Positions 958-64,000 of a stretch of DNA of 64,000 nt are shown here, in pieces. Under the pieces are notes generated by a model. It was not told where the DNA came from, made no database searches, and worked only from the letters and a program-made list of their open reading frames with translations. The stretch's first letter is position 1, and the number at the start of each line of letters is the position of its first letter. Made by a program: the position numbers and the translations under genes. The DNA comes from Camelus dromedarius (lineage: Eukaryota): contig NC_087454.1 in assembly GCF_036321535.1 (NCBI RefSeq), positions 17,422,001 to 17,486,000 on the forward strand, in the 5' to 3' direction.

Positions 958-1290
<333 letters not shown>

Positions 1291-3885: not shown

Positions 3886-3950
3886 TTCACCACACTGAAC
3901 CAAACGGTAGTGCTCCGCAGGGACCGTAAAATGCCGCCGGGCCACAGGGC

Positions 3951-13350: not shown

Positions 13351-13384
13351 TTTGGGGTTAGGTGNNNNNNNNNNNNNNNNNNNN

Positions 13385-13765: not shown

Positions 13766-14493
<728 letters not shown>

Positions 14494-19430: not shown

Positions 19431-21221
19431 GACCTACCCAGATGGATTAAAGATCTAAATACAAAATACGAATACTCAATGAAATTTTAGGGAACAGTTT
19501 GTATAACCTCAATTTTGTATGTGTGTGTTTTGAGGGAGAGTTGTCATTATTAAGCAAGACAGGAAACACAAGTGCCATATAGGAAGGGACACAGACCACA
19601 AAGGCCAAAAATAAATTTAAGATGAAATACAGCACAGAGAGTAGAAAATAAGCAGGAAACTGGGATACAGGATTTGCTAAACATTATACATCAAAGGTTA
19701 ATGGTCTTAATTTAACCATTAGGTTAAAGACCTGCAAACTGCTAGGAAAAAAAATTAGAAAAAATACTTATCAGAATATTTTCTGTTTCATTAAATTCCA
19801 ATAGACAATACATATGAGAAAAAAACAAAGCAAAAAATGTACAACTATTCACCTTCCTACAAGTTAGATTATGCATATTACAGCAACAGTGGAATAGCAC
19901 TTCTCACTATGGATAGATAATCACTAAACCAGTATTACTTAGGATGCTAAGGATGAGGAAGGATTGCCACAGCTATATAATCTTTTGAGAAAATTTCCTG
20001 GCAACATATATTCAAATTGATCCATAGACACTTGACCTTTTGCAAAACAAAATAGTATTAGATTAATTAAGTAAATCAAGAAGAAAAAAATAGAAAGTAG
20101 AGAAGAGAGGGTATCGACCGTCTAGAAATAAAAACCCCACTATGTGAGGTTATATGAGGAGAGATTGTTAACCTGTATAAGCAGTTGTGTGTAAAGTGTT
20201 AAAATCAGTGTGTATTAAGTTTGTAACTTAAAGTATAAAAAGTACCCTCCCTCTGTACACTTCTCACTCCAAGTTACTTTCTATCAATCATCCTGCTTAG
20301 ATTCTTGAAAATACAGTCTTAAGATTTTTATCAGATCCCTTGTTTGCCTGTCCCCATTGTACTCTGCTCCATGAAGTGTGGGATCTGCTCTGTCTACTCC
20401 ATATGACATCTCAGCATCTATGAGAGGGCCTGGCACTCAACATTCTGGGGACTGAACCAGGGACTGTATCTTGTAGCCCAGAAAGCCCTCTCAGAGCCCA
20501 GGAAGCACATGATTATCTGAATTTCTGTATAAAAATGTTTGCTCACTAACCATTGTTACTACATTGACTACTGCCCTACACAGCTCCCCAAATGGCAGTG
20601 AAATTTGAAGTACTGTGTACTCAATTTTTTTTTCACACTCTACCTTTTGCCAGATTTTTGAACTGACCCCTCCAGACTTAAATGTTTCATGATAACCCTC
20701 AGTGGCCCAGGAATACCTAATTCCTTTAAGGGCCTATTCTCTGCTGGCTGATACCATGCAGAAAAGAATCCTCTTTAATACCCTCTGAGTTTGTGGTTAT
20801 TAAATGTTTGCTTAGAATCAAGGAAAGAGAAGGGTGTGTGTGACCAAATCAATGCTGTTGCATCCACTTACAATGTCTGTTCTGCACATAAGGGCACCTT
20901 GGTGGCTTTTACATTCTAATGTTGGGGTTATCCAGTAAACAAGACCATCTACAGGGTGAGTATGTCAAAAAAATTTGATCATGCATCTCCATACCCTGGC
21001 ACATCACAGCCTTTCCATATAATAGATCTTCAGTAAGTATTTGGAATGAATACACAGAATTAATTTGTTGACAACAAAAGTTGTATCTGCACAGAAATGG
21101 AATAATCACTAAGCTGCAGGGACTTGGGAGTTTATTACTGAGTTACAGACCATTTTAGCCACCACTTGGTTTCAAATTCCAGTTGCTAAATTTGGAGGGA
21201 GATACATAACTGGTTCTTGAG

Positions 21222-28934: not shown

Positions 28935-29010
28935 GGGGGAGGGTATAGCTTGGTGGTAGAGTGCATACCTAACATGCACAAGGTCCTGGGTTCAATCCCC
29001 AGTACCTCCA

Positions 29011-38904: not shown

Positions 38905-39561
38905 ATGTCCGAGACTGCGCCCGCCGCACCAGCTGCTCCGGCCCCTGCCGAGAAAACGCCAGTGAAGAAAAAGGCCCGTAAGTCTGCAGGTGCAGCGAAG
39001 CGTAAAGCGTCTGGGCCCCCAGTGTCCGAGCTCATTACCAAGGCTGTCGCCGCTTCCAAGGAGCGCAGTGGCGTATCCTTGGCTGCGCTCAAGAAGGCGC
39101 TAGCGGCTGCTGGCTACGACGTGGAGAAGAACAACAGCCGCATCAAGTTGGGTCTTAAGAGCCTGGTAAGTAAGGGCACCCTGGTTCAGACCAAGGGCAC
39201 TGGCGCCTCAGGTTCTTTCAAGCTCAACAAGAAGGCAGCTACTGGTGAAGCCAAGCCTAAGGCCAAGAAGGCGGGCGCGGCCAAACCCAAGAAGCCCGCA
39301 GGAGCTAAGAAGCCCAAGAAAGCGACTGGAGCAGCCACCCCTAAGAAGAGCGCCAAGAAGACCCCAAAGAAGGCGAAGAAGCCTGCTGCGGCTGCAGGAG
39401 CCAAAAAAGCAAAGAGCCCGAAAAAGGCAAAAGCAGCCAAGCCTAAGAAAGCACCCAAGAGCCCAGCGAAGGCCAAAGCGGTGAAACCTAAGGCGGCAAA
39501 ACCAAAGACCGCCAAGCCCAAGGCAGCCAAGCCAAAGAAGGCGGCAGCCAAGAAGAAGTAG
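38905..39561 (+). CDS. H1-4: Linker histone H1.4, 218 aa
   Basis: Complete [32 protein letters not shown]...[10 protein letters not shown]; ARKS motif; nearly identical to human H1.4 as recalled. Confidence 0.96.
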
Positions 39562-40969: not shown

Positions 40970-43304
40970 ATCCTTTTATTCCAAAGGCGATTTTTCAGAT
41001 TTGTCCTGCCAAATTCTAAGCTCCACTACCATTCTTTAATGTTTTAATGTACTTATGGAGGAAGTAATTGTAGGAAACCTAGACAACGTGCCATAAACTG
41101 CGCGCTCACTACGGGCAAGTACAGTCCCATAGAACTATAAATTATGTAGTATCACATAGCCAGATACTAACTTACACTGAAAATGCCATTTCAAGTGTAC
41201 AGCTTTCCTTTCCGTGTGTAGGTCTACAAGTTGATCCTGCCTTTGATCCCGGATTTGGCGATCACCGCTTACTCAGAGCACAAAAGCATGCTCTGACTAC
41301 TTCATTCTGCTCAGTTTTTCTTTTCCGTTTTTCTTCTCTTTTTCTAAGTATATAGACATGTGTTTCTGAACAAAAAAAGGCTGAAGACAATGTGAGTTAT
41401 CACAGAAATAATTATAAAGGGTTTTCTGGTTTGCTTTCTTGAAAATTGGTCCAATTTTCGCTGGAGGCTCTGAGCAGCGGGTGGGGGAGGTGGGGAAGGA
41501 GCCTGTGCTCCATCCTAAAGGCACCGAGGGAGAAGAACGGGAAGCCTTCTTTGACACGCCTTCCAGTCAATCTTGTCAGTTACTATACTTTCATTCTCTG
41601 AAAGTCCTAATCAATTTATAGTCCTTCGGTAGCATTCAGATTTAAGGTCCTCAGGGTTACAAGACAGAAACCCACTCCTCAATCCGTTAAGATGTCTTGA
41701 CTCAGGACTGACGCCCCCTTTACAGCACCGTTTCCTCTTTCCCGGATGTCCCCGAGCATTGAGGGAGGAGAGGAAGTAGAAAGGGAAGAAAAGCCCCTTC
41801 TGGCTGGATGTGGTTTTACTGCACGATGTAGGATAGCTTTAAGGGTGTTCGCTGCTGGAACAGATTTGTGGGGAAGTTAAATCTCTGGAATCTCGAAAAA
41901 GGGGCTGGGAGGGAGTGGCCTGGAGGAAAGGAATCAGTGGTCAGAGGTCACCAAGAAAACTGCAAAGTAGATGAGGCTGGAAAGGGAGGCAAGTGCTGGT
42001 TGAGGTGGAGAGTTTAGAAAGGGGGTGTTGTTGTCTAAGAGAGGAATGAATTTAGAAACCCTAGGGTTTGGGAGAAGGTGAGAACCCTAAACAGGTGCTC
42101 TGGATCACGGAGATAGATTTTCCATAATAGGGCAAGTGGGTACTTGGATGGACAATTAAAATCCAAAATAATACTTAAATTTACAAAACACTGTGAAGAG
42201 CCACTATGAAATAAGGAACTCTCATTCCCAGGTGCTTGACCCAGGGAAACCCCAAACACCACAGCTAGCTTTCACCCAAACCTGAGCTTTGATTTTTAGA
42301 GTGTTATGTGAAGCCTGTCCGTAGTGGGGAGCATGATAAGGACTCTTTCCCACTGAAGCTGAGACACTAGACCAAAATGAACTAGAAATAAACACTCACA
42401 CACTCACCATAGATGATTGCAAAATCTGCCCTGACCCTTGGTGCTGAACAAGGAGATTCCACCACTGAGAATTTGGCCTATAAGCCAGCGTTCACACGCA
42501 TTTCTTTCAGCATTAATACCACAGGGATTCAAAGCACCTAGGCTGAGAATTTAATATAGAGATAACCCCGACTGGTTTAGTGCCCCTGAGCACCTGGTAA
42601 AAGCAAATACAAGTCCTCTCTCGAAGAATAAGCTTCATTTTAGGCCTCCACAGATAAATATCAAAAAGAAAAAAAAAAATGAGCAGTTTCACAACCAAAA
42701 TTAACCAGAAACACCATGAAACAAGTAACCATGACCAAGAGCAATGAACTATGAGAAAAAAGCTAACATAAAAATTTATTTAAAATATAGGTATTGAAAC
42801 TGATGATTGAGAAATACTAAAAAAATTACAATGTTTAAAGTGTAAGATAACTGATTAAGAGTTAAAGAAGAATCTAAAGAATTGAGTCATGAAAGCTTAT
42901 AAGGAGATTCTTGTGTGTCAAAATGCCCTAGTAAATTGTACCATGGCACTAGTTTTTTATTTATAAATGATGGTAAGAGTACTTACATGTCAATTCATTT
43001 AAAAGATAATCATTAACTATCTCTGGCTTAGTCATCTATATGGACACTGGTGATTCAGAGAAACATGGTCGTCCTTGACTTCCTGAAACCCTCAAGTTTG
43101 TAAGGCTGTCAAGGAAGCTTAGACTTAACTGCTTTCATATTCCTTTATCTTTCAATAAGAACCAAAAAAGTGTTTATCACTCTTTGCAAATCTACAGGCA
43201 GGTAAACAGATGGGCTTCTATGGGAACTACCAAATTCATTCAATGAAGGCGATAAAATTCATCCCAATTTTTGAGTAATAAATATTATACAGTAATATTA
43301 ATAC

Positions 43305-43915
43305 TATTGTGACACAGTGCAATGCTTAGGAACAGTCCATAAGACCGCACTCACATCTGACACCAACTGCAGTGTTCAGAGTTCTCTCCAAAGCCACCCT
43401 TGGATTAGATAATTTAATAGAAGGACTCACAGAACTCACCAAAAGCTATTATACTCAACGTTAGTGTTTATTAGACCAAAGGACACAAAGCAAAATCAGC
43501 AAAGGGAAGAGAACATGAAGCAGAGTCTAGTCATTTGCCAGCGGAGTTATGGAACGTTAACAACACCTCCCTGCAACAATGTGTGACAGCATAATGCATA
43601 TTGCCAACTAGGGAAACTCACCTAAGCATTTTATGAGGCCTTTATCACGTAGACACGATCGACCACCTGAGTGGCTGATCTTGAGTCTCCAGTTCCTCTG
43701 GAGGTAGTACAGATACAGCATGGCCTAAAGCCCCCAACATGAATGATATTATTCCACTAGTCCATTAGTGGAATATGGACCTATGATCCTATTAGCTCAA
43801 GGCCTCCTGGTAAACAAAGATATTCTTAACATGCATTCCAAGGGCCTAAAAGTTACCTTCCAGCAAAGGGCAAAGGCTAAACCTCTTTCGATAAGGTTAA
43901 TTCTGAACATAATCA
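43305..43915. mobile_element. MER21-like LTR
   Basis: cataagaccgcactcacatctgacaccaactgc...ggactcacagaactcaccaaaagc...aaaatcagcaaagggaagag. Confidence 0.6.
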
Positions 43916-45208
43916 TAAGAAAATATGTAAGTATGACTTTTTTTTTTCCAATTTTGAACTATATATCTATCAGTGACCATAACTTGAGTTCTACAACTAT
44001 TTGCTTTTTTATGATTGTACTATCACATAGTTTTGTATATTTAGGTCACCTGTGGACCTAGAGATTATGAGATTTCTGATGGAAGACAATTTTTCATACT
44101 TTATTCAGATGAACAGCATCAGCAGTCTTCTTGATTTGTACTCCCAACTGCCCTCCAAACCCTAGGTGCAGGAAAAGAAGACTTAGGAAGGGTGAAGGTC
44201 AACATTGGGGGAATGTGGGTATTCTTCACCTTCATGTTGGTGGCGTGGGCATTTAGTGCTACATAGAAGAAAAAACTCAGTTTCTTGACATGAAAACAGC
44301 ACTTGACTTTCCTTTTCATAAACGATGAAATCTGCTGCCATGCACAGAGAACAGGAATTGTAGAAAAGTAAAGGAGTTATGCTTTAGGATTTTATTTAAG
44401 TTTTTAACAGTGAATGTTAAGTTGTGTTTTATAAATACAAAACAAGTATCCCAGCCAAATTATGGGTATTTTTTAAGAAAAGAAGGAGGAGGATCATGGG
44501 AGAAAAAGAAAGGTGAGAGAAATTGAGGACTCAGAAAAAGTATGGAAGAAGTAGACTGCTACTACAGAAGGGAGAGAAAGGGCCTGGAGACCAAAGAGAA
44601 GCCTATAGCGGACTGTGATGGGAGAGAGGCAGGAAAAGAAAAGAGGGAGATGGCTAGATTGACCTTATGATATATTTAGTATTTTTGCCAGGTATAAGAC
44701 TTGCAACACAACTGAAATATTCTCCACATTTCTTGGGTTTTCGGTTGACTGAATTGATTAAAATGGTATATCTGGGAGATGTTCTCTGACCAGTAGATGT
44801 AAAATGTCACCTCTCTCTTCACATTTTTTAACTTGCTCTATTCATTCTTCTTCATTATACTTAGTGCTAATTGACATAAATTTATTTTTTGTTTCCCTTT
44901 CCCATTGTCAAGACTGTTAATCTCCATTGGGGCAGGGTTAGTATTTTTTACCACTGACTCTGTAATACCTTGGCTGTTCCAGACACAGACTAGGCTCTCA
45001 GTAAGTATTTGCAGCACGATGTGATGAATTAATTGAAATACATATATGTCTATAACAATAAAGATAGAGCACAGGGCTGATTTTTGAGAATATTCAACTG
45101 AATGAGTGACTCAGCCTTTCTGAGTCTCACTTTCTTCATCTATAAAAGGAGAATAAAAATCATACACTACTTAGAGTTATTTTAAGGACTAAGATAATTT
45201 ATGTAAGG

Positions 45209-45335
45209 AGGGGAGGGTATATTGCTTAGTGGTAGAGTGGGTTTCAATCCCCAGTACCTCCATTAAACAAACAAACAAACAAACAAAGAAACCTAATTAT
45301 GCCCTCAAAAATTAAGAAGAAAAAATATTTTTTAA
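45209..45335 (+). mobile_element. tRNA-Ala-derived SINE with internal deletion
   Basis: ggggagggtatattgcttagtggtagagtg-ggtttcaatccccagtacctccattaaacaaacaaac. Confidence 0.75.
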
Positions 45336-45807
45336 AGTTTAACAAAAATTGAAACCGTTTTTTTTTTTGTTTTTTTTTTTTTGTTTTTTTTTAAGAAGAG
45401 ATCATTTGTGTAAAGCTCTTAAAAAGTTATGGACATTTAGTAAGCACTTGGCAGTTGTATTTTCCTTAGTCACTAAATTAAAACGAAAATCAGAGAAGCT
45501 AATTCTTTTCAGATCAAAAATTAAGAGAGAGAATATAAGCTTTTTATCTATTTGAATTCTACCCCGAGGGGTAATTGGGGGATTTGGAACAAAGATTACA
45601 TTATTGAGGAATATCTCTTGACTGAGTATGATTTAAGTCATTATCTGTTCATGTTAGTAATGACTAAAGTGTGCATAACACTGGAGGGGAGATTCCTTGT
45701 AGCACATTATACAAGCATATGTAAACAGATCCCTCTTCATTGTGTAGCAAATATTAGTGCTAATGGCAAAATGGCACCTAACATATAAACCTTTTTTATT
45801 TCTTCAG

Positions 45808-46205
45808 TCAGGGGAGCGATATGAGTGCAAGAAGAACTGAATGCAAGCAGAAAGTGAAAATGAGAATCTGGCTAGAGAAGTTATGAAGTATGATGTCCAA
45901 TCTGCCTGAGATGATTGATTAGTCTGTATATCCCACACAAATCCTATCCATCTGATTTACTGCACATTGATTTATCAAAAGGTGATCATTACCTGAGTGG
46001 AAGAGCATAAACAAGGTGTTTTAGCTTTTTCATTGTATTTATATTTGAATTAAAGAAATAGAATTTACTTCTGTTACAGGCCTAATTACAGGAATTCACT
46101 ACTTACTGTGGACTACCTACCTTTGCTGGGGAAAGCCTGAATGAAAGGATGGCAAGACATCTGTAAATGAGATGCTATAATTAATAAAATCTGTGGATAA
46201 TTGGA
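45808..46205 (+). other. Candidate distal non-coding terminal exon of H2BC5 (spliced, polyadenylated isoform)
   Basis: Branch-like CTAAC 45778-45782; pyrimidine tract ccttttttatttcttCAG| ending at 45807; AATAAA 46183-46188; U/GU-rich sequence downstream. Confidence 0.7.
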
Positions 46206-46402
46206 ATGCTTCATTCATTGTTGATTCAAATCCTTCTCCTAAGATCTCTCCCCCTTCTAGACATACAATTTATTTATTTTTTCATTTTATTTTTTGGTAT
46301 TAATTTCTCAGTAGATAAGTCCTAAGTGCTATTTTGCCTTTGGTAACAATCTTGAATCAAACGAGTTAGTTTAGCTAAGCTGACATTTGAGAGGTCACCT
46401 TC

Positions 46403-46780
46403 TGTTGCCAAATCCTGTTTCCTGTACCCTGGTATCTAATCAAGGCTCAGAGACACAGAATTTTAGGGAAGAGGAAAGAATAGCTTTATTTCTTTGCCAG
46501 ACAAAGGGGGTCACAGTGGGCTACTGCCTCAGGAGTGCGAAGCTGGTTTGGGGAAGAGTTGTGGGGAGTTTTATAGTGAAAATCCAAGGAACAGTGCTTG
46601 GAATAGGACGCAGGGCTGCATTCCTTCCTTCTTTGATACAATCACAGTGGTAAACGGTAATCTGGTGACAAGGTCTTCTGTTCCTGGCAGTGAACAAGGC
46701 ATATCTCCTGACATTCCTGTGCCTGGAACAAAGGAAAGGAAGGGGTGTATATGTTGGGAAAAGAAAAAATACGTGCAGTT

Positions 46781-46838
<58 letters not shown>

Positions 46839-46919
46839 GCTCAAAAATGTCTCAGAGTGAGAAGCCATTTGAGGTTACCATTAAGTGACTATAACCACTG
46901 TGCCCACTGTGCGGTTGCA
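46403..46919 (-). mobile_element. ERV1-type solo LTR with 4-bp TSD
   Basis: TG...CA termini; TSD CTTC at 46399-46402 and 46920-46923; minus-strand AATAAA within aatagctttatttctttgcc. Confidence 0.75.
46783..46834. repeat. (AC)26 microsatellite inside the LTR
   Basis: Uninterrupted AC run. Confidence 0.95.
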
Positions 46920-46957
46920 CTTCAACATCCGAATTAAGTGGAACACAGTATTTTGAA

Positions 46958-47163
46958 GCAGTTTCAAACTTAAGTGTACGCTAAAATCACCTGAAGGATT
47001 TTTTAAAAAGATCGCTTTGAGATCACTCTGAGGGCCCCACGTCACAGTGTTCTGATTCACTGCAACTGGAGGAGGACCCAATCATTTGGATTTCTAAATT
47101 ATGAAGGTGATGCTGATGCTGATGCTGCCGGTCCAGGGATAACACTTGGAGAACTGTGCTTTA
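46958..47163. mobile_element. MER5-like hAT-Charlie element
   Basis: aaaatcacctgaaggattttttaaaa...ttctgattca...ggtgatgctgatgct...cacttggagaactgtgcttta. Confidence 0.6.
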
Positions 47164-47289
47164 GGACATGGGGTTTCCCTGAGATGATACTACCAAACAG
47201 CTGCACAAAACCGAAAAAACACATTGAGGTTTAAACTGGAAGTCAGTACTGAAAATTAGTACCTCCTCCCGGTGCGGCCATGCTGGGGT

Positions 47290-47750
47290 GCAAAGTACAA
47301 AGTGGGCCCTACACGCCCCGCCTCTGCCGGCTCCTAGTAACCAAGGCCCACACGCCGACTCCCTCATTGGGCAGTCCTGCCACGCCCCTCCATGCCGGCT
47401 CCCTCATTGGGCATTCCTGTCACGCCCCTCAATGTCGGCTCCCTCATTGGGGCGTCTCGCTCAGCCACGCGTCCCTCCGCTCCCCGCAGAGCCGCAAGCT
47501 ACGTATACACCGGGTAACGCCATTCGCGCTCCTCCACTCCGGCCTGCAGTTTGAACCCGCGAGGTTTCCCTGTGGCCGCCCCTGCTAGTGCGCAGACTCT
47601 GCCGACGCAGCCTCTCTCTTCTGGCAACCACAGGACGCCGGAGAGTCCGAACGATGCGCTGGGTCATTCGCAGATAAAGACACAGAACCGAGCAGTCTGA
47701 AGACCAAGAAGCAAGGCAACAGCCCCCCTCCTCACCCCCTCATTGGTTTT
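47290..47750. promoter_or_regulatory. Orphan CpG-rich promoter-like element with CCAAT/GT-box repeats
   Basis: High CpG density; ATTGG at 47366, 47406, 47446 and 47742; CACGCCC boxes; no adjacent histone CDS. Confidence 0.6.
47355..47451. repeat. 40-bp tandem repeat, about 2.4 copies
   Basis: ccgactccctcattgggcagtcctgccacgcccctccatg / ccggctccctcattgggcattcctgtcacgcccctcaatg / tcggctccctcattggg. Confidence 0.9.
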
Positions 47751-48363
47751 TCTCCTCCTCTCCCAACTTTTTTCTGAGTTGCCATTTCCTTCATAGCTAA
47801 TCCCCGGGAGGCCTGCCTTGCACCACCTCTGCTTATTGTCAGCACTTTTATCGGGCACTTTGTGTGAGTATTAAGTGCGTGTATACGTGGATGCACGCAG
47901 AGCCTGCATCCATTAGGCATAGCGGACACAGGGTCTACGACCCAGAGTACTTTTAGAGGCTCGCGAAGATACTTGAATTGCTTCTAAACTTTTAGGTCGA
48001 CGGAAACATTCTAATATATTGATGTTTTGATTTTTATATAATTTTAGTAATAATATCCTTTTTGTTATTATTTTTATGGAGGAAGGGATCCAGAACGGCA
48101 GATGCGCAGGACCCACAACAGATAATGCAGACTTGAGTGCGGGTAGCACGGACCCGTTTTCAGTTGTTTCTACTTAGTTAAAAAAAATTTTTTTTAATGG
48201 TAAATAAACACCCAGGCAAATTTTCAAGTGCTTTCTAGATGTTAACTCGTTTAATTCCCATAAAACATCTGTGAACTGTTATCCCAGCTTTACCTGCTTG
48301 TATGAATTACCCAAAATTCAAAATAATTTACCCAATGTTACCCAGCTAATATATGGCAGAGGG

Positions 48364-48503
48364 TACATAGCGCAGTGGTAGGGTGCATGCTTAGGATGCG
48401 CAAGGTCCTGGGTTCAATCCCTAGTATCTCCATTAAAAAGTAAGTAAATAAATAAACATGATAACCTCCCCCGGCAAAAAAAGAAAGAAAGATATAGATA
48501 CAG
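48364..48503 (+). mobile_element. tRNA-Ala-derived SINE with 13-bp TSD, inserted in a MIR
   Basis: TSD atatggcagaggg at 48351-48363 and 48504-48516; tagcgcagtggtagggtgcatgcttaggatgcgcaaggtcctgggttcaatccc. Confidence 0.85.
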
Positions 48504-48769
48504 ATATGGCAGAGGGAATTCTAACCCAGCCTGGTTAGCTCCAGGGTCCCTGACCTAAAAACCATTACACTAAAGATACTATCTTGAGATACCTCTAAAC
48601 AATTAATCCAAAAAAACAGCAGGTAAGATAACCACTTAACTCTAGACAGGCTACTCTGAGCCCTCTTCTCCACTTGGCCTTTAACAAAGTTGAACAAGAC
48701 TTGAACACTATTATACTGCACTAGCATACTTTGTAACAGCTCAAGGCCTAGGATGACCCCTCTTACAAA

Positions 48770-51239
48770 GCCTACCCCAAGTCAAGACCTATTCCTTTTA
48801 TCTTTTTCCTTTTCTGTTTTGTCTTTGTTAGTTTTTTAAGAATCATCTTGACTATTTTTGCTCATCAACATGAATTTTACAGTGCTTTATCAAAAAATCC
48901 AGTGAGTCTTTGTGGCATAACATTGAAATTTTAGGTTATTTTTAAATGTATGGACATTTTAGCATATTGAGACATCCCCAAACATAAAAATAGTCCAGCA
49001 TACATCACTTAATTTAGGTGAGTCTTGTTTCATATCCTTTAACAGCACTTCATAGTTTTATTCTTAGAGATCTGCAATACATTCCCTTGGGCTTAGAATC
49101 CTTAGAATGTGTTGTACTGTTGTGAATGATGTCTGTTTTATTTATTTCAATTCTAGATAGATCATTGCTTGCTAATGTATAGAAAAGGCCATGAATTATT
49201 GTTTTGTGGTGCGCATTTATTCACCAACCCTGTTGAGCTTATTAGAGATAATTGTTTATAGCTTCTCCTGGATTTTTTACAATGACATATTATTTTCAAA
49301 GAATAAATATAACATCTTTTCTTATTGAATTCTTACCCTTCTCATTTCTAGTCCTTGTCTCATCGTTTTGGCAGAACCCTTGGTGCCATGCAGAATAGGA
49401 GTGATACCACGGAATTTTTGTCTTTCTTTTGGCTCTTTGGGGAGTCTTCTAAAATTATACCATTAAATGTTAAGCTCACTGTAGCTACTCCTTATGAAGT
49501 AAGTAGCTACTACTTCTCGTTCTAGTCTGTTGAAAAATGTTTGTGATGAAGGAGCATTATATTCTAGCAAATACTTTCCCAGTATCCTTGGAGATGATAA
49601 CAGTTTTTATCTATTAATATCTTAAATTTGTGATGTAAAACACATGGAAGCATTCTTGGATAAACCCTACAAGACATACTATTGTTTTTTAAACAGTTTG
49701 GTCTCTTGCTTTCCATTTGTTTACATTTAAAATAGAGATTTATTTATTTATTTTTTTTAATTTGTAAGTAAGATGAGGCTATAATTTTCTCTCAATCTGT
49801 TTCTTTGTGTGTGTGTTGTTCCTGTTTAGTTTAGGTGAAGTTATAAAACTTGAGAAGAAAAAAAGGATAGCTATTTTTCTATTGAAACAGCTTATGTAAA
49901 ATAGGGATTATCAATTACTTAAATTTCACTAAAACCTATAAAACCCAACTTTGCTTGGAATTCTTTGGGTTGAAGAATATAGGAAAGATACATTTTTAAA
50001 CCCCCATCATATTTCCTTAATCATACTTTGTTTTCTCAGCCTATTCTTCTTCTTGAAATTATCGTTTTCTATTAAGAATAATGTTTTTCTAAAGATTGTT
50101 CATAGCATTCTCATGATTCTTTCTATCTACCTTTTGGTAGCTAATTTCCCTTTTTTATTCCTATAACTTATTTTCCCCTCCCTCCCACACACTTTTTTTC
50201 CTTAACTAGTCTTTCTAAAGGTTTGCCTATTATCATGAGACTTTTCAAAGAACAAGCTTGTGATTTATGGATCATCTCCATTTTTTCTATTTAATTAATT
50301 GTTCCTTTTAAATTTCAAAAATTGACATTGAGAATAATATGTCAACATACAAATCCATGAGAACCTATAAACAATTAGATCTAATAGAGCTCAACAGGAT
50401 TGATGGATAGATGAGAACCACATAAAAAATTATGGCCTTTCTGTACATTAGCAGAGACCTATCTTGAATTGAAATAGAAAAACCAGGCATCATTCACAAG
50501 AGTGCAACACATTCTAAGAATTCTAAGTCCAACTTTATCTGCTTTATTTTGATTTATTCTCTTGTTCTTTTTCTAGCTTTTTTTTTTTGATAAATACCTA
50601 TTTCATATGTCTTTAGTGTTTCTTTTCCTTCATACATACGTCTAATATTGTATATTTCCATTTCAGTACCACTTCTGATACATCCTACAATTTTCACATG
50701 TATTATTCTCATTCATATTTGTCTCAGAATATAAGTTTCCCTTAATGATATTCATTCTAATCCATGAAATTTAGAGGTGTGCTTTTAGTATCCAGTAATA
50801 TGGGAAGATTGTTTTAGTTTTACTATCTTTAAAATAACCTTTTTTTTTTCTCTTTAATTAGACGATGAAAAAGAGTACAGTGTTTATGAAACTGATTCTT
50901 TGGTATCTATTGTAACTTTTTCTAAAACCAAGGTTGAATTTTTGAAATGATTAAATATGTGCTTTCCAAAATTGTTTATTCTCTACGTATTAAGTGCAGG
51001 AATCATAGATCAAGTTTACTCATTGTGTTGTTCAAATATTCTGTAACCATGCACATTGTTCTTTGCTTGTTATGTGAATTTTTGAGTAGTATATTGAAAG
51101 TTTACCCTACAATCATAAACTTGAAGTTCCCCCAATTCTGTCATTTATTGCCTTACGTAGTGGTTGAGTGGTCAGGTGCATACAAGGTCTTGAATGTTAC
51201 ATCTTATCAGTACATCTTTATTTGGTCACCGTGGAGTGT

Positions 51240-51271
<32 letters not shown>

Positions 51272-51400
51272 TTTCTAGAGGTTCTGTTTTGTTATTTTTT
51301 GATTACCCTACTTAGATTTTCCCTTGTTCCTTGATTGTATTATTCCATCTTTATTTCTTTAACCTTTCAGTAAATAGTTACCTTACTGTTTCTGATCATT
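48770..51400 (-). mobile_element. Degraded old L1 fragments
   Basis: T-rich L1-like antisense sequence (cattaaatgttaagctcactgtag, ttttcaaagaacaagctt, aagtgcaggaatc); boundaries rough. Confidence 0.5.
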
Positions 51401-53089
51401 TCAATATTTGAAATTCCTAGGAGAGAGCAAGGGGATCTAAGGCTCCTGTTTATCTGAAAGCCTGACTCTCCAGTGTCTGTTTTCCTCTTCTGTTTGTTAC
51501 CATTTATTATAAGCTTATACGTGGTAATCCCAAGTTCCTAGTAGAGTGCCTGGTAAGTAATAGGTGCTCAGTAAATAATTGCTGAATAAATAAATCACAA
51601 TCTGTATGAATCTAGAGAACTTGAATTCAAGATGCTTCCCTCCTGAAGGGGTTTACCTTTGCCTTCACAGGGCACTAGGAGGCGCTCTGAACCTACATCA
51701 CTAATTTCACAACCCTTTCCTTGAAACCCCAGATTCTATGTAAGTGGTTAAATCCCAGTGGCAAATTTCCTCTGTCCTCCTCCACAGAGTTCTGCGGAGA
51801 CAGACAGGTTTTCTTCTTGGGAACCTTTGCTAGATTAACCTTATTGTAACCTATCCTTTCTTCCAGGGTCCTGGGTTTAGTTTAAGGGTTTCGAATCCCC
51901 TTCCCCAAGGAGCAGATATTAATTGACAAAGTTCAGAATCTTGATAATAATAGTTGCCCCAGAGAACCCAGTCTAGTGTGTTTATCTCTCTGGTTTCAGC
52001 GCCTAGGTTTTTCATTGCTTTGCATATTTCAAGGCATTTTCTCAGTTTCTTCTTAGCTGGGCAATGATGTGCTACTGTTTTGTTGTACTTTATCTGGTCT
52101 TTAGGTGTTTTCCTTCAAGATGGCTTTGTATCCAGAATATCTTGTTTTCTGTATTGGAAATAAGTTTTTACAGTGTCCCTCTCTATCCCTAATACTTTTA
52201 GCTTAAAAATGTGTCTGCTATTAATATTGCTAACTTGCTCTCGGTAAACATTCCCCAGGCATGTGTTCCTCTCATTCTTATTTTTTATTTATTGTTATTA
52301 TATAAATATATGCATAATTTATCTTCATTCAAATAAGAGGAGCACTTTTAATGCATATTTTTATTACACATATTCTTTTGCTTTATAAAAAAATGTAACC
52401 ATCTAAAAGATAAACTACTGTACCTATGCAAGAACTCTAGCATATACTTTTCTGAGGGAGACAAAAGAAAACCTATAAAACTTCCAGGTGACCACAATCA
52501 TACAGGACAATAACTAAGCATATATTTTATTTGAGTTAATATCTACCCTTATTTTGGAGTTACATTTTTTGTAATCCTAAAAGAAGAAATCACTGTTATT
52601 GAGTCTGGAGACAATTCATATGGGGAAATTATTTAATAAAGAGTGTGGTAGTCAATTTTGTTTTAAAATTAACAATCCTGGGGACTAGGTAACACCTTTC
52701 ACCTCTTTGTCAAATGATCACTGCCTCAGAGGAGTTTAGAACAATTGGGATTCAGGAGCTTTGCCTAGACAGACAATTTTCATGGTATCCAACATATATT
52801 TCTATAAATAATTATATTTCATTAATTTCACTTAATAATACACTAAACATAAAACCAAATGTGTTTAATATTTTACTTTTTTTAAAAAACCAGACCCAGC
52901 AAGATTTAAAGGAGATGTCTTTAGTTGTAACTAACATTATTGACCTTTAATCTGAGCCTTGTGATCCTAGAAAATAGTGATTATTAAAGAAATTCTCCCC
53001 CTTTTTGTATTCCAAAAATAATTTACTGCAAGGAGGCACTGTTTTCACCTATGATTTGGAAAAGATAAAAAAAAAAACAACTCCTGGTT

Positions 53090-53660: not shown

Positions 53661-55770
53661 TCATGGACTATTTTGTCTGCCCTGTACACTGTGTGTGTTT
53701 CTACTAAATTCATGTAGGTATGGAATGAACACTCTAGTTTGGGTCAGTCCTCACCACTCTTCAGTGTTATATAGATCTGTTCACCTGTGTAGAGGTTATA
53801 GCCTCTATTCATGGTTACTACATTTAAATTAGTTGCCTGGTCCTTTTGAGACAGGATGGAAGGGGGCAGGGCACACCCATTAAAAGAATAACACAGCAAT
53901 GAGCACCAAGATGGCCAAAGATTCAATTCCCAGTCGATCTTGAGGCCCAAGATAGTAGAAGATTTGACTTCCAGCAAACCTTGACCTTCATTATATGCTC
54001 ATTTTGCAATAATAGCATGGTAAAGGGCACTCCCATAGACATTATAACAGAAATTTTGGGGTGAAATTTCATAGGTTGGCTGAAATATGAGTAAATTTAG
54101 AGAAATCGTCGACCCTAAAATTATTGGGTATTGACTTAACTCTACAGCTTTGGCTCTTAATCAGTGGCTTTCAACTTTATCTATAATGGAAATATATCAA
54201 AATCTTAACTAGTAAATTAATAAGTTGGTGATATGGTGAAGCTAATATCAACTAAAAATAGATAAAGCTAATAGCAATCACTGAATCCTTCTCTCTATGA
54301 TTTACATTATCTATATTTTGTCTCTCCAAAATACTGTCTCATTCTCCAGATAAGTTTCTCTTTTTGCCCCACTCTTCCCCATCGGCCTCTTTTTCCACTG
54401 AGTCTTTTTCTCTCCCTCTCCGCCTTTTCCATTTTTTCTTTAATCTAGTTGTAATTTTCTTTCTCATTTTTCTCTCTCCTCTTCCTCCATGGACTAGGTA
54501 TATAAGAGAATCAACGTTTTTTTTTTCATTTTAACATTCTCCTTCAGTCATTTAAAAAATGCTTTATTTGCCATGCTTCTAAAGTTAGAAGAAATCACAA
54601 CAAACTTTTCTCTTTTTTTCCTAAAACAGCCCACCAAACGCCAGCGGGAGTCTTATGAAGGATTCAGATTTAAGGCAGACTGCTTTAATCATTATCCTGG
54701 CTCCACAATTTACATGTTAATGGGATTTGAGGGAAAAGGCCTTGTCTCATGTTCTCTGGTTTTCTTTTCTATAAAATGGAGGGCAAAAAACAAACACAAA
54801 CAAACAATCAGGTAGGGTTTTATGATTAAATAAAATAATACATATAAAGCATGTTAGCTATTATTCCAAACATTGCTACACGGGCTAAATTGGGGAAAAG
54901 TAAAAATAAAAGAGTGAATAGGTCTTCAGGAGATTTCCTCCTCAATACCAAAGTGAGAAAAACAAATTAATTACTTTGTGCCCTTTTTGTTTGCCAGCTT
55001 ACCACGTGCAGCTTGCAGCCCTGGATTTACTGCCAGCAGGGGAAGCCAAAAGGTGGGGCAGCGTAGAAAGTCTTAGAAACATCTAAATCAAATTCAGGGG
55101 AAACAGGTCTCAATAGAAAGGAAACATGTTAATGGAAGAACTAGCTAAAAAGCCGGTTTCTGATAGTGATAATAGTAAATTGTAAATAAAAGTATTTATC
55201 ACCATGTTCTCCCGTTTCAGTTGTTTTCTGGGGTTTTTGTTTCTGTTTTTAACTAAGTAGAAGGAAGAGTAATTTCTGATCCGCTTTAGTGGCTAACCTG
55301 GATGTGATTTGATCGTTTCCAATACGAAGCACTGCAGCGATACTGGCTACGAAATTCTTGCATTTATTACCTTCCTTTAAGCTACGTAACTTTAAACTTT
55401 GACATTTATTTTCACGCTATATTTCTACATTTTTGGTATAGTTGGAAACACTGTCTTAGGAATTTTTTCGATTACCGTAGATCGCCTATTTCTTCTCAGT
55501 TCTTCCTTTCCCTGTCACTAATCTAGAATCTGGATTCAAAGGCAGAGTGACAGCTTTTCTAGGAGTTGTAAACAGGCCTTGCAAATCGGAGAGATAACCA
55601 GTCCATGAAATCTGCCTTTTTGATATTTCAGAATACTGTAGAGAGTGCTATCTAGTTTATATCCTTAACAAACTAATCTGAATTGTTATAAACAACTACA
55701 GAACTTTTAAAATAATTTAACTAGATTAAAGTAGCTGGCCTGATTGCTGGAAAACTGTCTCAGGAGATAG

Positions 55771-55886
55771 CCAATGGGAGGGCACTCCCCTAGTTATCTT
55801 TTGCATGCATACCTCTTAACAAATGAACGAATCAGCAGTTGCCGAGTTAAGGCCTCATTTGCATAATACTGCCTACAAATAGGCAG
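55771..55886 (+). promoter_or_regulatory. H2BC6 promoter
   Basis: CCAAT 55771-55775; canonical octamer ATTTGCAT 55857-55864; TATA-position variant TACAAATA 55874-55881. Confidence 0.78.
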
Positions 55887-55930
55887 GGTCCTACAAAGCG
55901 GACACCATTTTGTCTGTGAAAAAGCAGTAG

Positions 55931-56317
<387 letters not shown>

Positions 56318-59300
56318 NNNNNNNNNNNNNNNNNNNNNNNNNNNNNNNNNNNNNNNNNNNNNNNNNNNNNNNNNNNNNNNTGTAGCTGTGCACTAGCAAG
56401 TGGTATTTCCTGAAAACTAGGCTTGCAATTACTGTTACAGGTTGCACTTAAAAATGCAGTTAGAAAGCGAACGGTTCTTGGGGTTCAAACTTGCATATTG
56501 TTCTGATTACCGTCCCCTGTACGAGGATTCCCATCAGCATAAGCGAACATGGATCTTAGCACTAACGGCCAGCTCTTCGACTTCTTGGTCACCTTTATGG
56601 AACTTACACAGATGCTCTGTGGGCTGGTAGCGAGCTTCGGGAAACTGGTCTGTTTTTGGTAAAATACCACGTTGTAGCGTCAAATAGGTCAGAACAACAT
56701 TTGAATCTCCCGCTATCCAAAAGCGGAACTTCCTCTCTGATGCTGCGGATCCTCCGCCTGCCCATGTTGTTTTGTGGGATCTATTTCCTTCTCTCTCCCC
56801 TAGCCCTTTGCCTAGGGCTTTCGAGTCCTGGCTAAGTATTTTATCTAAGACTCTTCACAAACCTGGTAGATTGGCTGTAGTTCTCCAGTAACGGAAGAGC
56901 AGTTATTTTTACTGTCCTTTTAGTCACTTTACTAAATTTTTAAAAAGCTCTTATCACTGGATTTTTAAAAAAATTTTAATACAGTCATCTCCCCACTCCA
57001 CAGACTTTTTGCAAACCTACAAAACTCACAGAATTTTCAGTGTTCAGCTCACCTGTGTGGTCACATAATATAAAGGTCGGCTCTGAAGCTTTCTAACCAC
57101 CCTTTTCTGTAACTTGCAGTCTTTTCCGAACCCATCCCCCTCTCCTGCCTCCAGCTCCCCTTTCCCTGCACAGTTCAGAAACCGTGGAGCGATCTTGACA
57201 AAAGAGGGACCCACGGCCGGTTCAGATCTCAGAGAGGAAGCACCGTGGAAGTAGGAGATGACTTTTAACTGTTGTGGGCTGAGCTCTTGAGATTTGGAAG
57301 CCTACGGTTTGTGACCACATAATGCCCAAGAGACTAAATCCTGGGAAATAGAGTCGGGCGCTTCCCTCATTTCTCCGGAAACTTCAAGGTAGGGACTTCC
57401 TTCAGGAAGTTAGGTGGAAAAGGTTCGGTGGCTTGCATCACCCATAAATGGAAATATCAAACCCACCCAAGAATGGCTACCACTGTCCTTAAACATTCCT
57501 AACCAGCCTCCTGGACCAGTCTATCTGGTCTCCCATTTATTGTCTCAAAAACATAAATAAAATAAGCATAAAGACACAAACAAGTCTTTATTTTTCAGGT
57601 TCCCAAATTACAACAGAATTTCAACTTTTCTCATAACCTTGATTTTAGTTTGAGGTAATACTGACACTCCTTCATCCATAGCGAATTTCGTTTTCATGCC
57701 AAATTCGCCATGTTTTTTTGGCTTTGTATCTTTCCTTCACAGCCATTGGATGGTTCCGAACTTGACAAAACTAGAAATTCTGTGCTATTGCCACAGGCCC
57801 TGCATTGTCCAGCCCTCACCTAACTTTCCAAGTCAACCTCAGAGGACTTTTTCTTTTGTTTTTGTTCATTTCTTATTTTTTGGTTTGGGTTTTTTTGGTT
57901 TCTTTTTTCTCCACCTCTACAGTTTTTCAACTACCAAGGCCTGGCTGCCTGCTTGTATTCACTGTGGGATGGCAGCAGCAGCTGATTTGATGACTTCAGC
58001 GCTCTTTGTTTATTGATATGGCTTGCATTATTTTTCATTCAGAGATGTGTAAGTTTGCAATTCAGAGGCAAAAGGGGACTGGACTTATAAATTTTGAAAA
58101 TTTTTAAAATAATTTAATGTCAGCATGGCATGAAAATAGGTTTCAAGAAAGACTTTTTCAAACTGGTGTGATGCCTAGTAGGCTGAGAACAAGAGCTTTG
58201 GACACAGAAAATGGAGAGCACTGGGAACTCAGGTTACAGATACTAAAGGGCAACCCACACACCATCTGGACACCTTCAGGGCTCATGATTATTACCTCTT
58301 CCGTGGGGAAAAACCTCCACTTAGAGCTGAGCCCAAAGTGTGAGAATTATGTTGATACCCTTTCTCTTGTGCCACTGTATCTCACTGATGCAGACATCTG
58401 CCCAAATAGGGCAGATTTGTTTGCCTTGAAGTTGGGAAAACTGACAAAAGAAAAAGGCCTGAGTGTTCAGCATTTCCCTAAGCATGGTCAACAAAAAAGT
58501 TTCAAGAGATTTTAATTTGTTTAAATTACCTGAAATTGTTTTGTTATGTCTGCATCCAAAAAACTTTCATTAATACACTTGCTACTTAAGAATATATGTA
58601 AACATGTTTCTTTAAACACGTACATAAACCCATTATCCTATGTTGTCACACTCAGTCCTCACGAAAACATGAAATTTCTCCTACATTATAGATAAGGGAA
58701 CAGTGGTTAGTAACTTGCCACAGATCACAAAGAAAATGGCAGTTCAGAATTTCAACTGTATGTCTTCATGGTTCAAAAATGCCCGTTTCTTTTCTCTGAG
58801 CCTCTTTCATGTCATGAGAAATAAGAACACTAATAATAATAATATCAGTCATCAAAACAGAGCATTTCCCATGGCCATGCACTGGCCAAAATGCTTAATA
58901 TTTAATGTTATTTACCCCCAAACCAATAAGATAGGAACTACTGTTATCTCCATTTTACCGATGAGGAAACGCGCACAGGGAGGTTAAGTGACTTAACCAA
59001 AGACACAAAGAGTACAAACTACCTTCTGTACAAGTTTTCCGGTTCCTTTTTATCTTTGAAGAGGGATATTGGGACTGTTTCTTGTAAACAGAACAAATGA
59101 TTTACTCAGTGACACTGACTACTAAATATTTAGACCCTACTATATATTTACCAAGAATAGCAATGGAAGGTAAGTTCAAAGAAAGCCTTAAGAAACAGTT
59201 CACGGACTTCTGCCTTAAACAGCCTAAAAATAAACTCCCCACTATTTTTATTTACTCCTAAATCTTATGAGATACAGTTTGGGCCTTTACGCCTCTGAGA

Positions 59301-61084
59301 ATCAAAATTTTTCAAAATGGGTTATCTTTCTTGCATTCTAGTTACAGTGTAAAGGACTCATCTCACTTGTCAAGAATATATAGATCTATTGCACACAGTG
59401 AATAAATACATGTGCCAAATTTACTGCTGTTTGATGTGTTCTTTATGCATTTGGTCTGCCCTTTTCTCTGTAGCCCTAAATTTTGGATTTCTACAACCTC
59501 AGACTCTAAAATCCTAGACTCCAAGTTGTTCACAGGAATCCATGGAGCCCTGGGAATTACTTGAATGAGCTCCATGAAATACGTTTTATACACACACACA
59601 CACATATAAGTATATGCACACACAGATCCTCAAAGAAACTTATGATCCACATACTGTTAAAAACTCCTAAGGGGAGACAGTACTTTGAAATATCCAGATT
59701 ACAACTGCTTAAGGCATGTGGATATTCCACATCCCTAACAGGTAACGAGCCCTTATTCTGTGTTCTAGCATGGAACACCATGGAAAGAGTTGAAAAAAAA
59801 TGAGTTGAAAAAAACATACTTGGTATGGTAAACTTTAGTTCTTATAATAGAGGCTCAACAGTAAATTAGCTTAAAGACAGTTAAGTCTTGTCACTTGGAA
59901 CAGATCCACTGTGATCAGTCCAGCTCTGTGGTGCAGCGCTGCTCCTCCTGATCGGGATCTGTTGTTCCTTCCATCATTGTTCTGCCATCCCTAGCGCCTG
60001 AAGTTCTCTGCTGGGCCAGACAGTATCAACACCTTCATAGAAGGCAGCAAGAAGGATGAAGGCTCGAAAGCCTGGGAATATCTTCTACTGATGCTTATTA
60101 GAGAGCAGGTAGCCACATGCTCACCCCTGCTCTCAGATAAGCCAGAAATATTGCTTCAGGCCCGGGAGTTATCTGTCCAGGTATTCCTTTTCTTACAACA
60201 AAGAGAACAAGTTTTAGTTGAAAAAATGCCAGTTGTACTACAATAACCTAAGATTTTTTTCACAGAATAAAACCCATTCTGAGGACACTAAAGAATACAG
60301 TGGCAGGCTGACAGTCCTGAGAGATTGTAGACAGTTTACAACAGGTAACAAGAAACGGGTAACGCACTTGAGAACTGCTTGTTTTGCCTCATTTTCTGCT
60401 GTGAAGGGAACAAGACTGGAAATCATGAAAACCTGGGTTTGAAAGGCTCACTCCAGCCTTTTTGTCAGGGTATGTGGCACGCAACCAGTTTATTAGAGTA
60501 TTTCAAAATTGACTGTAGTTAAGTCTGTTACTCAAGATAGAGCCAAAATAACTTGGTAAACATAAACCGGCATACTTATACCAGACATAGATGCATCAAT
60601 AGGTTCTTTTTGATTGTGAAACAGTAGCTCTGGATGGATGGGAAAAATAAGTCAGCCTGTCTCCATTCCACTTTTAAACAAGAGACCTCACACTTTTCTC
60701 TGGTAGAACTTGACTGTCTTCAGCATTACCAGTCCTCCCCTTTCTCAGGTCCTCTTTATCATGTGACTTTTAACAGGTTTTTTCAATATCCTTAGCTGAG
60801 GAGTGTCTACATTAGTTCTTTTTCCCGATCTTCTACCACAAGACTTGACCTCGTCTTCCATAAAACTTCCCAGCTGGGTTTCGCTAACAGTTGTGCAAAA
60901 TAGTTTTATCACCATAGATTAGCCTTCTTGCTCTAAAGATAATACATCGCACATACACCAAACCGACTATAGATTAAGTGCAAACCTGCTAAGGCCTGAA
61001 ACATACGTAAATCACATTTAAGTTTACAGGTTGTCGACAGTACTTACCTGTTTAAATACCTTCTTATAAAACTAAAACAAAGCG

Positions 61085-61127
61085 TTAACTCTTTTAAGTG
61101 AGCGGATAGGTGGCCCTGAAAAGGGCC
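61085..61127 (-). terminator. Histone stem-loop and HDE of H4C4
   Basis: GGCCCTTTTCAGGGCC at 61127-61112; AAAGAGTTAA at 61094-61085. Confidence 0.93.
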
Positions 61128-61163
61128 TTTGGTTTTGCCGTGCGAAGCAGGGCGATCGGTAGT

Positions 61164-61584
<421 letters not shown>

Positions 61585-62296
61585 AACCACAGTCGGTCCA
61601 GCCCTTCGTTTATTTGTCCCTTGCTCAGAGCCGTAGTGACTAGGCGGGGCGCCTAAAGCGACAATGGATCCTGGAAGTGAAATTTAATCAAGGTTCCTAT
61701 ACGTGAATTCGTGTTTTTGTGTATTCATACAATACGTGAAGCCATTAAATAGGGCAATAATTCATAGACTTTCCATAAAGAAACCCGATGCTTGTTCTTC
61801 AGATTTCCCAGAATATGAAATAGTTAATACAAGCTATTGTCCCCAAAACTCTTTAAACACGGTTTTAAAGAAATCCTATATTTATTGTTTAATTTTCCAT
61901 TAGTTTTATCCACGTGTGGTTGTTCCGTTATCTAAGCAGAGCTCTTTATCACACACTCTGGATAACCCTACTGAGGAAGCTGAGAATATAAAGTTAAACG
62001 TTTGAGAGATCAAGTAACGTTAAAAGTCACTGAGGGCTACATTGGAGATTTATAAATATGTATATCCCAAAGTGATAAGAACCTTGCTCTACTGGAAGTC
62101 TAAGATTTATGGTTTGATTGTGTATTTAATTATGGACAGGTTTTATCTGGCACTGTATCTGTCACCACATTCTATTTCTCCAACCACTTGGCATTACAGT
62201 GACCAGTCAAGTTCTGGAGATAGCCTGCTCCACATACTAGCCTGTGACTTTGGGCAATCTATACTTTTTTTCATTTTAAATGTGCACAAAGATGTT

Positions 62297-62415
62297 GGGT
62301 GACGGTATAGCTCAATTGGTAGTGTGCATGCTTAGCATATACAAGGTCCTAGGTTCAATCCCCAGCACCTCCTCTAAAAATTAGTACATTAAATGTAACT
62401 AACCCTCCCTCTCCA
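62297..62415 (+). mobile_element. tRNA-Ala-derived SINE
   Basis: ggtatagctcaattggtagtgtgcatgcttagcatatacaaggtcctaggttcaatccccagcacctcc; TSD aaagatgt at 62288-62295 and 62416-62423. Confidence 0.82.
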
Positions 62416-64000
62416 AAAGATGTATAGGAAGGTATAAATTACAGAGCACTTAAATTTAAGAGATAATCCAAAATTTTTAAAATAATATCAGGAAATAAGC
62501 AATTACTCAACAACATTTATTATGAAATATTGTACTACTGTGGCTGCTCTCAACTCCTCCCTTCAGTACTCACCCCTCTAAAGTGAGGAGCCTAAGCAAG
62601 TGTTTAATTTGCAAAACGCTTGTTTTGTGAACTCCTCAAAATAATAAATACATAAAGATTTAATTTCTCATTATTTCCCTTGAGGTTCAGCTGACTTTGG
62701 ATAGATTTTGCTTTTTACTCCATGGTAAGGAGGACCCTGTTCATCAAAGCTCTTCCATGAGTTTACAGTGCATGGAAACAAATTCTACAATGGAGTTGTT
62801 AACCTGGGATATATAGATGGGCTCAGAGCATCTGGAAACTTACATAGAACAAAAATTCCATCTTTATTTTTACTATACTCCAATTGGATCTTAGTGTTTC
62901 CTCCTCTTGTGAAAATGTAGTCAACAAATAGGGTGATTGGCAGGACCCATGCTCTGTTCTATTACGTTGTAATCACAGCTGTCAATGTCTCAAAATATTG
63001 TTTAAATATATTACTCTTCCTAAAATGTGGTGATTTATGGTCATATGGGTAATCTTATTATTTAACATATTAATAAAGAAGCACATGTTAATACTTCACT
63101 AATTTGGATTTTTGTTAAATTTGACGATGGTATTTTTATATAACTGTTTTCCTTTATAATCCTGTGTATATTATTTTAAGCATTGAAAAGCATTATTCTG
63201 GGAAGGAGTTCATAAACTTTATCACACATACAAAGAAGTCCATGGTACAAAAATGGTTAAGAATCCCTCTTCTCCAGGATCTTGAAAGTCTGGAAAGATG
63301 CTGGGTTTCAAAAATGTGCGGAGAGAAACATTGGGAAATTCCATGAATGCTGGAATGAAACTGACATATTAGTAAAAGTACTCTGATAGAGCTAAGGGTA
63401 AATGGAAACAATTTTCTCCACTTATGAATAGTAAGAGGTCATTTCCTCTTCCTCTTAGAGAGTTTTCTTGGAGAAATAGTGAGTCTGAGTTTTCACTCTT
63501 CCCTTAGGAATACAGTGACATTTTTCTAGGGATTAAGCCCAGTCTCCAGTTTTTACAATGGAAAGAAATCTCCTAGGTAGTGAGCCGAATAACCTCTAGA
63601 TATGTAAAAATATACATCTGTTATTAGCTTAGGAGTCTTTCACAACATACACATGAGAGGTGAACATGTCAAGGTGAATGGGGCGATACCATGAAGATTC
63701 TCTACACTTAGATACCTAAGAGATAACTCTTCCTTTGTGTTGCTGCAGAAAACCAACTATAATGAGTTAAGGTCATTTTTAGCTTAGGAATGCATGAATC
63801 AATAACATGTAAATATACACTCCAAGTAAAAATGTTTATATTGAACTATTTCTCCTCTCATATCATCCATTTCAATTGCTCTTAATTTTTAATTTTTATT
63901 AATGTTCATTAATGTTTTGATGTTTAACTTGAATGTACTGCATGAAGTGATCAGTCATTTGTTGATTTTGATGGGACCAAAGAGGAGTATTAAACCCTTA

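Follow-up and report, generated by a model that had tools for sequence, protein, structure and literature searches.

What is a CpG island without a histone gene of its own doing between two H2B genes? We consider this question in a 64-kb stretch of Camelus dromedarius DNA (the window), which is part of the main mammalian histone cluster and whose histone genes are listed with the other features in Table 1. The initial annotation of this stretch described an orphan promoter-like block built from a 40-bp repeat with CCAAT and Sp/KLF-type boxes, possibly amplified in this lineage, and proposed that it could drive a spliced transcript into the H2B gene at the H2BC6 position. The island is genuine and old, an orphan that is neither a young LTR nor a histone-type promoter; in the best reading of the sequence it has stayed free of germline methylation, and that it acts as a promoter is, on balance, likely.

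Setting and composition of the island

The CpG observed/expected ratio, 0.33 over the whole window, rises to the value given in Table 1 over the island and to about 1.0 over 47400-47700, and the 800 bp of the island lie above the thresholds of Gardiner-Garden and Frommer for length (at least 200 bp), GC (at least 0.5) and CpG observed/expected (at least 0.6). No histone ORF overlaps 47201-48000, and the description of a CpG-rich block without histone coding sequence is therefore borne out. Neither a histone ORF nor a Histone3 stem-loop is found between 41 and 55.9 kb, which rules out a relic of a histone promoter or pseudogene. A small RNA gene is ruled out as well, because Rfam has no match over the island even at E <=1. 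The ORFs of the island are all of 102 aa or less; a homology search with the 102-aa ORF returned no homologue, an exact look-up of four ORFs in Logan contigs recorded nothing, and the called protein genes leave the island uncovered both in a second Camelus assembly (L005) and at the bat (L009), squirrel (L010) and bear (L012) loci described below.

The island starts about 1 kb past the AATAAA of the putative distal terminal exon of the H2B at the H2BC5 position. To its left is a (CA)n microsatellite at 46785-46835, and the stretch beside the latter, at about 46950-47200, is presumably similar to an old interspersed repeat. Directly 3' of the H2BC5-position H2B, BLAST finds the block at 41100-42750 conserved at 65-70% in pangolin, bat, squirrel, desman and bear; its two camel copies agree at 95-99%, and it could be either a regulatory block or an extension that is transcribed. 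In Prionailurus, a felid (locus L007, 1-3545), the annotated range of a 129-aa H2B-type gene exceeds 3.5 kb and contains no H2B ORF over its last 3.5 kb, so that a distal 3' coding exon is annotated there. Elsewhere in the window, other short CpG-island-like blocks lie outside histone coding sequence at 1681-2020, 15441-15800, 56621-56820 and 57161-57380, and an Rfam tRNA match (37 bits) at 28939-29010 on the plus strand, which is not called by ARAGORN, is probably a tRNA-derived SINE.

Table 1. Features of the window and of the compared loci; positions are those of the window unless a locus is named.
Feature	Position	Strand	Remarks
H4	979-1290	+	
Testis-type H1	3253-3945	-	
H2B	13358-13786	-	
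H2A	about 14101-14490	+	
H1.4	38905-39561	+	
H2B at H2BC5 position	from 40510	+	
Putative distal terminal exon region, H2B at H2BC5 position	45600-46299	+	from sequence; paralogue identity 0.92-0.97; 70-76% to bat, squirrel, bear
CpG island without histone coding sequence	47201-48000		GC 0.57; CpG observed/expected 0.77; 48 CpGs
40-bp tandem array	47311-47470	+	units 47311-47350 (weak), 47351-47390, 47391-47430, 47431-47470
Three CCAAT boxes in CCCTCATTGG	47361-47370, 47401-47410, 47441-47450	-	exact 40-bp spacing
Unit missing from L005	47381-47420		flanked by 10-bp CACGCCCCTC direct repeats
Island core just 3' of the array	47471-47870		paralogue identity, CpG retention
Fourth CCCTCATTGG	47737-47746	-	not conserved
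Donor-like GTGAGT, weak candidate	47864-47869	+	5.4 bits; identical in paralogue
Proposed acceptor before H2BC6	55485-55499	+	pyrimidine tract and AG ending at 55499
H2B at H2BC6 position	from 55937	+	
H4 (H4C4)	61164-61475	-	
Camel paralogue island	L006 18501-19060		three CTCATTGG boxes
Bat island, Rhinolophus sinicus	L009 17481-17940		GC 0.61; observed/expected 0.62
Squirrel island, Sciurus carolinensis	L010 19861-20860		GC 0.60; observed/expected 0.96
Bear island, Ursus	L012 19721-20520		GC 0.62; observed/expected 0.91

The repeat unit in Camelus and in other orders

The left part of the island is a 40-bp tandem array in which every unit carries a CACGCC(CC) box and the last three also carry CTCATTGG, that is, CCAAT on the minus strand. 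The weak preceding unit was recognised by eye; Tandem Repeats Finder reports, at 47354-47451, a period of 40 with 2.5 copies and 91% matches. Between the units at 47351-47390 and 47391-47430 there are 4 differences in 40 positions; the third unit shows 68% similarity. The 10-mer CCCTCATTGG occurs four times on the two strands of the 64 kb (at 47361, 47401, 47441 and 47737), where 0.19 would be expected, and none of 100 shuffles reaches four copies. The spacing, the small difference between the first two units and the fourth copy are all as the initial annotation placed them. Its claim of an NF-Y/KLF-Sp array also holds as a statement about sequence: the CCAAT boxes (NF-Y-type) and the CACGCCCC boxes (Sp/KLF-type) share one orientation, in an array that arose by tandem duplication. 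The fourth CCCTCATTGG is probably incidental: it is altered in the camel paralogue and deleted or altered in bat and bear, and its stretch is without a squirrel counterpart. A metagenome scan for two boxes 40 bp apart gave four chance matches with no further likeness.

Two other camel sequences bear on the history of the array. The second Camelus assembly (L005, GCA_048773025.1) is 99.4% identical to 41-49.5 kb of the window and lacks exactly one 40-bp unit, so that it has two boxes and the window three. Because the units differ by 10% and the assemblies by 0.6%, the array with three boxes came first, and that with two arose from it by a deletion; a collapse during assembly of L005 is possible but unlikely. 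The other sequence is a paralogue of the island about 26 kb downstream, found in a C. dromedarius assembly (L006) that matches window positions 55276-64000 at 99.4-99.6% identity. It belongs to a segmental duplication in which 12187-22076 of L006 is 82-88% identical to 41000-51626 of the window; the block in L006 lies downstream of a second H1-H2B pair, which begins just beyond the window end, and comprises the distal exon, the island and 3.6 kb beyond. As the paralogue has three boxes too, the three-box array predates the segmental duplication. The divergence of the units and the three boxes of the paralogue together rule out a recent tandem amplification.

The two camel copies also tell which part of the island has been kept. 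Their identity is 0.99, 0.98 and 0.93 across 47500-47799, about 0.8-0.87 around the island and 0.78-0.87 in the array. From the first copy to the second, 23 of 24 CpGs are retained in the core (47471-47870), against 8 of 13 in the array and 3/9, 2/15 and 0/7 in the flanks, where the lost CpGs have mostly become TpG or CpA. Since the core CpGs were kept while the flanks decayed, both camel copies retain a core of the unmethylated type; by this indirect comparison between paralogues, its CpGs have escaped TpG/CpA decay as germline-unmethylated DNA does. The 98-99% identity of the core and its CpG retention could come from gene conversion rather than selection, because an identity of 95-99% is reached elsewhere in the duplicated block too (at 41400-42599, 43800-44399 and 45600-46299, beside 47500-47799).

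The next question is whether the island exists outside the camels. Comparison loci were taken as DNA near H1.4 genes in other assemblies, with H1.4 proteins as anchors; L006 and the felid locus were obtained via fused H1-H2B models, and both lie downstream of H4C4. The pangolin locus (L008), with the island beyond the locus, and the desman locus (L011), with a gap and an insertion at the place, are uninformative. Bat, squirrel and bear each have an island (Table 1) directly after the block that aligns to 45.4-46.4 kb, the H2BC5 distal-exon region, and each of these islands contains the 39-40-bp unit. The squirrel array is a 39-bp repeat of 8.5 copies, whose consensus, when best rotated, agrees with the camel unit at 27 of 40 positions, a value that none of 500 shuffles attained; CGCCACGCCCC is present in all squirrel units and CCAAT in none. 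Of the two 40-bp units of the bear, one carries CTCATTGG and the other CTCGGTGG; the bat has about two decayed units with a single CTCATTGG. An island and a unit shared by camel, bat, bear and squirrel date back at least to the ancestor that these orders have in common. The island is therefore not a young LTR, and a lineage-specific solo LTR or U3 is ruled out; no AATAAA is present in 47290-47870 and no other copy of the island within the window. As to the ultimate origin of the island, it may be an ancient co-opted repeat.

Counted by box, CACGCC occurs in one orientation 4 times in camel, 2 times in bat, 11 times in squirrel and in both units of the bear. In sequence, the Sp/KLF-type boxes are repeated and conserved as CCACGCCC / GGGCGTGG. 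Predicted NF-Y boxes with CCAATGAG flanks number three in camel and in its paralogue, one in bat, one in bear and none in the squirrel array. The GC/GT box is the constant part of the unit, with CCAAT in camel, bat and bear, and the CCAAT-bearing unit has multiplied in the camel lineage. The suggestion of an amplification in this lineage is right to that extent, with three CCAAT units in camel against one each in bat and bear. It does not describe the array as a whole, however, which is ancient, has 8.5 units in squirrel, had its three-box form before the camel duplication, and has lost a unit in one Camelus assembly.

Overall, the island is 45-70% identical to that of the bat, no higher than the neighbouring DNA, with about 70% at 47600-47700. 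Conservation of position and composition with turnover of sequence is common for non-coding-RNA promoters. The bear locus (L012, 1-20648) has the order H2B, H4 on the minus strand, H1.4, H2B, distal-exon block and island, which is the order of the second camel copy, and the 10 kb upstream of H1.4 is without a histone gene in bat, squirrel and pangolin. The orders thus differ in how this part of the cluster was duplicated or rearranged.

Promoter, boundary element or relic

We propose that the island is a TATA-less RNA polymerase II promoter-like element of the Sp/KLF plus NF-Y type in the histone cluster. The 40-bp units would serve as an upstream activator array, in which each unit supplies a CACGCCCC box, joined in camel by CCAAT, and whose copy number drifts via slippage or unequal exchange. 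The more constrained 400 bp that follow (47471-47870) are the best candidate for a core promoter with a first, non-coding exon. The product would probably be a non-coding RNA or an untranslated first exon; this product, like the factor binding, the transcription and its strand, is what we infer from the sequence.

Some hints come from sequencing libraries. In 14 small libraries of unrecorded type (49-898 million letters, from six studies), 66-93% of 47000-48200 is present as contigs. In libraries so small, contigs over a single kilobase suggest that the place is strongly enriched and, as the kilobase is covered throughout, apparently unspliced, which would fit open-chromatin, ChIP-type or unspliced RNA libraries. 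Recorded RNA runs hold 20-43% of 45700-48100, probably the H2BC5 distal-exon side, and are absent among the listed holders of 47000-48200; in the recorded RNA samples, the island may therefore yield little stable RNA.

On which strand might the island be used? The order of the boxes, the core and then a GTGAG motif, which is found in the paralogue and nearly in the bat, fits plus-strand use. The GC skew of the plus strand is -0.3 to -0.5 over the array in camel, bat and squirrel and rises to zero or above further right; a negative skew of this kind is usually read in favour of minus-strand or divergent transcription. On this ground, the island might fire mainly on the minus strand or divergently and send a G-rich antisense RNA back over the H2BC5 distal exon, near which it lies in all four species. 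CCAAT and GGGGCGTG do read forward on the minus strand, and a fair minus-strand donor (8.0 bits) stands at 47735. That donor is within an unconserved stretch, however, and most of the skew is inherent in the repeat unit. We regard this antisense use as unlikely, though worth keeping in mind, and the plus strand as slightly favoured by the sequence. All donor scores here come from a rough splice-donor matrix, on which the best nearby sites reach 9-11 bits.

According to the proposal of a spliced transcript into H2BC6, the island is an alternative upstream promoter of H2BC6, and a first exon ending at 47863 is spliced to the 55499 acceptor to give a spliced H2B mRNA. The island lies on the same strand 8 kb upstream of H2BC6, a GTGAGT and a pyrimidine tract with AG are at the required places, other H2B genes of the cluster have distal exons (that at the H2BC5 position and the felid model), and a long human H2BC6 transcript model may exist. 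Conservation is against it. In the bear, the pyrimidine tract and AG are missing at the aligned place. The donor is weak (Table 1); the bat has GTGAGG 2 nt away, and bear and squirrel are without a counterpart, so that no conserved pair of donor and acceptor supports an upstream first exon of H2BC6. In bear and in the second camel copy, moreover, an H2B-H4 pair that aligns to H2BC6-H4C4 stands upstream of H1.4-H2B; the island is then downstream of the pair and cannot be its upstream promoter. No protein-gene range in L005 extends to the island. In the literature, we found no paper on a start site, CpG island or transcript between H2BC5 and H2BC6, nor one describing the proposed transcript; U91328.19 and AL031777.3 (ENSG00000282988) are named, without positions, and AL031777.3 is called a putative H2A isoform. 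The spliced H2BC6 transcript therefore finds no support, and we consider it highly unlikely.

The lesser motifs fare similarly. The initial annotation had pointed to a YY1-like CGCCATT (47518-47524), a CHR-like TTTGAA (47550-47555) and the GTGAGT, and their positions are correct. They are unremarkable by chance, though, with TTTGAA occurring 101 times and GTGAGT 30 times on the two strands of the window, and are at most shared with the camel paralogue or nearly with the bat. The YY1-like site and TTTGAA are common only to the camel paralogue and are missing in bat, bear and squirrel. None of the three motifs, nor the acceptor at 55499, goes beyond chance.

The island could also be something other than a promoter. 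A role in insulation or termination, as a CTCF site or as an island at the 3' end of a long H2BC5 transcript, would account for its place directly after the distal poly(A) site in every case. A CTCF core motif, judged by eye against the textbook consensus, is perfect in the bear (L012 at about 20160-20185, minus strand) at the equivalent of 47567-47590 and has one mismatch in the bat. With three mismatches in camel and no motif in squirrel, and with a C-rich sense strand that is the opposite of an R-loop termination skew, we hold a boundary or termination role to be very unlikely. There is a still slighter chance that the island is a functionless GC-rich minisatellite, CpG-rich through biased gene conversion or recombination, or an ancient repeat-derived relic. 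Free variation in copy number (8.5, 2-3.5 and 2 units) and a high turnover of sequence would be natural for such a relic. What it would leave unexplained is that four orders, and both camel copies, have remained CpG-rich at this one position while the CpGs of the flanks decayed, that the best-kept part is the non-repeated core and not the minisatellite, and that the window has no second copy beyond the segmental paralogue.

A more speculative extension of the promoter reading brings these observations together. An Sp/KLF-box minisatellite may have stayed in one place in the histone cluster from before the time when camel, bat, bear and squirrel diverged, with its partner box exchanged (CCAAT being present in all of these but the squirrel) and its copy number changing within Camelus, and may act as a copy-number-tunable promoter or boundary for replication-independent, polyadenylated H2B expression of the neighbouring gene or genes. 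We think this rather improbable. If the island is active, it would be a conserved promoter of a non-histone type in the main histone cluster, just after the distal exon of the polyadenylated mRNA of one H2B, and might regulate replication-independent histone expression. It would then also be a clear example of a promoter minisatellite that stayed put over tens of millions of years despite turnover in its units, its partner motifs and its copy number. For now, the island is well documented but of an ordinary orphan type, with putative activity, and is distinguished by a long-lived minisatellite with motif turnover, by the copy-number difference within Camelus and by its paralogous twin.

Resemblance to known systems

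How does the island compare with promoters of known types? The replication-dependent H2B promoters around it also have CCAAT boxes, and the CCAATGGGAGGG of the H2BC6 promoter, at about 55772, is close to the CCAATGAGGGAG of the repeat unit. In contrast to these promoters, the island has no octamer, no TATA box and no histone ORF in or next to it, and no 3' stem-loop follows in 41-55.9 kb; it does not qualify as a replication-dependent histone promoter.

Promoters of the G2/M type, such as those of CCNB1 and CDK1, have phased CCAAT boxes plus CDE/CHR at a spacing of about 31-33. The island resembles them in its two to three same-oriented, regularly spaced CCAAT boxes, in the lack of a TATA box and in a downstream TTTGAA. 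Unlike in those promoters, the spacing is 40 bp, and the TTTGAA at 47550 lies 100 bp from the last box, is a motif common by chance and is not shared by bat, bear or squirrel; a CDE/CHR cell-cycle promoter is not what these features describe.

Promoter VNTRs made of factor-binding units are known, for example the 30-bp repeat upstream of MAOA, and the U3 of primate ERV-9/LTR12 contains 40-bp repeats with CCAAT and GT boxes. The island shares with both the tandem units of 30-40 bp with Sp/KLF and/or NF-Y sites and a copy number that differs between close relatives. LTR12 is known from primates only; unlike ERV-9/LTR12, the camel island is orthologous in four mammalian orders and has no internal poly(A) signal.

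The closest in kind may be the orphan (intergenic) CpG islands, which Illingworth and colleagues are said to have described in 2010 as unannotated promoters. Like these, the camel island is CpG-rich and TATA-less, lies away from annotated starts, is conserved in position more than in sequence, and has kept its CpGs in comparison with its flanks. It differs from typical orphan CpG islands in being known here from its sequence, in being built round a minisatellite, and in lying inside a replication-dependent histone cluster.
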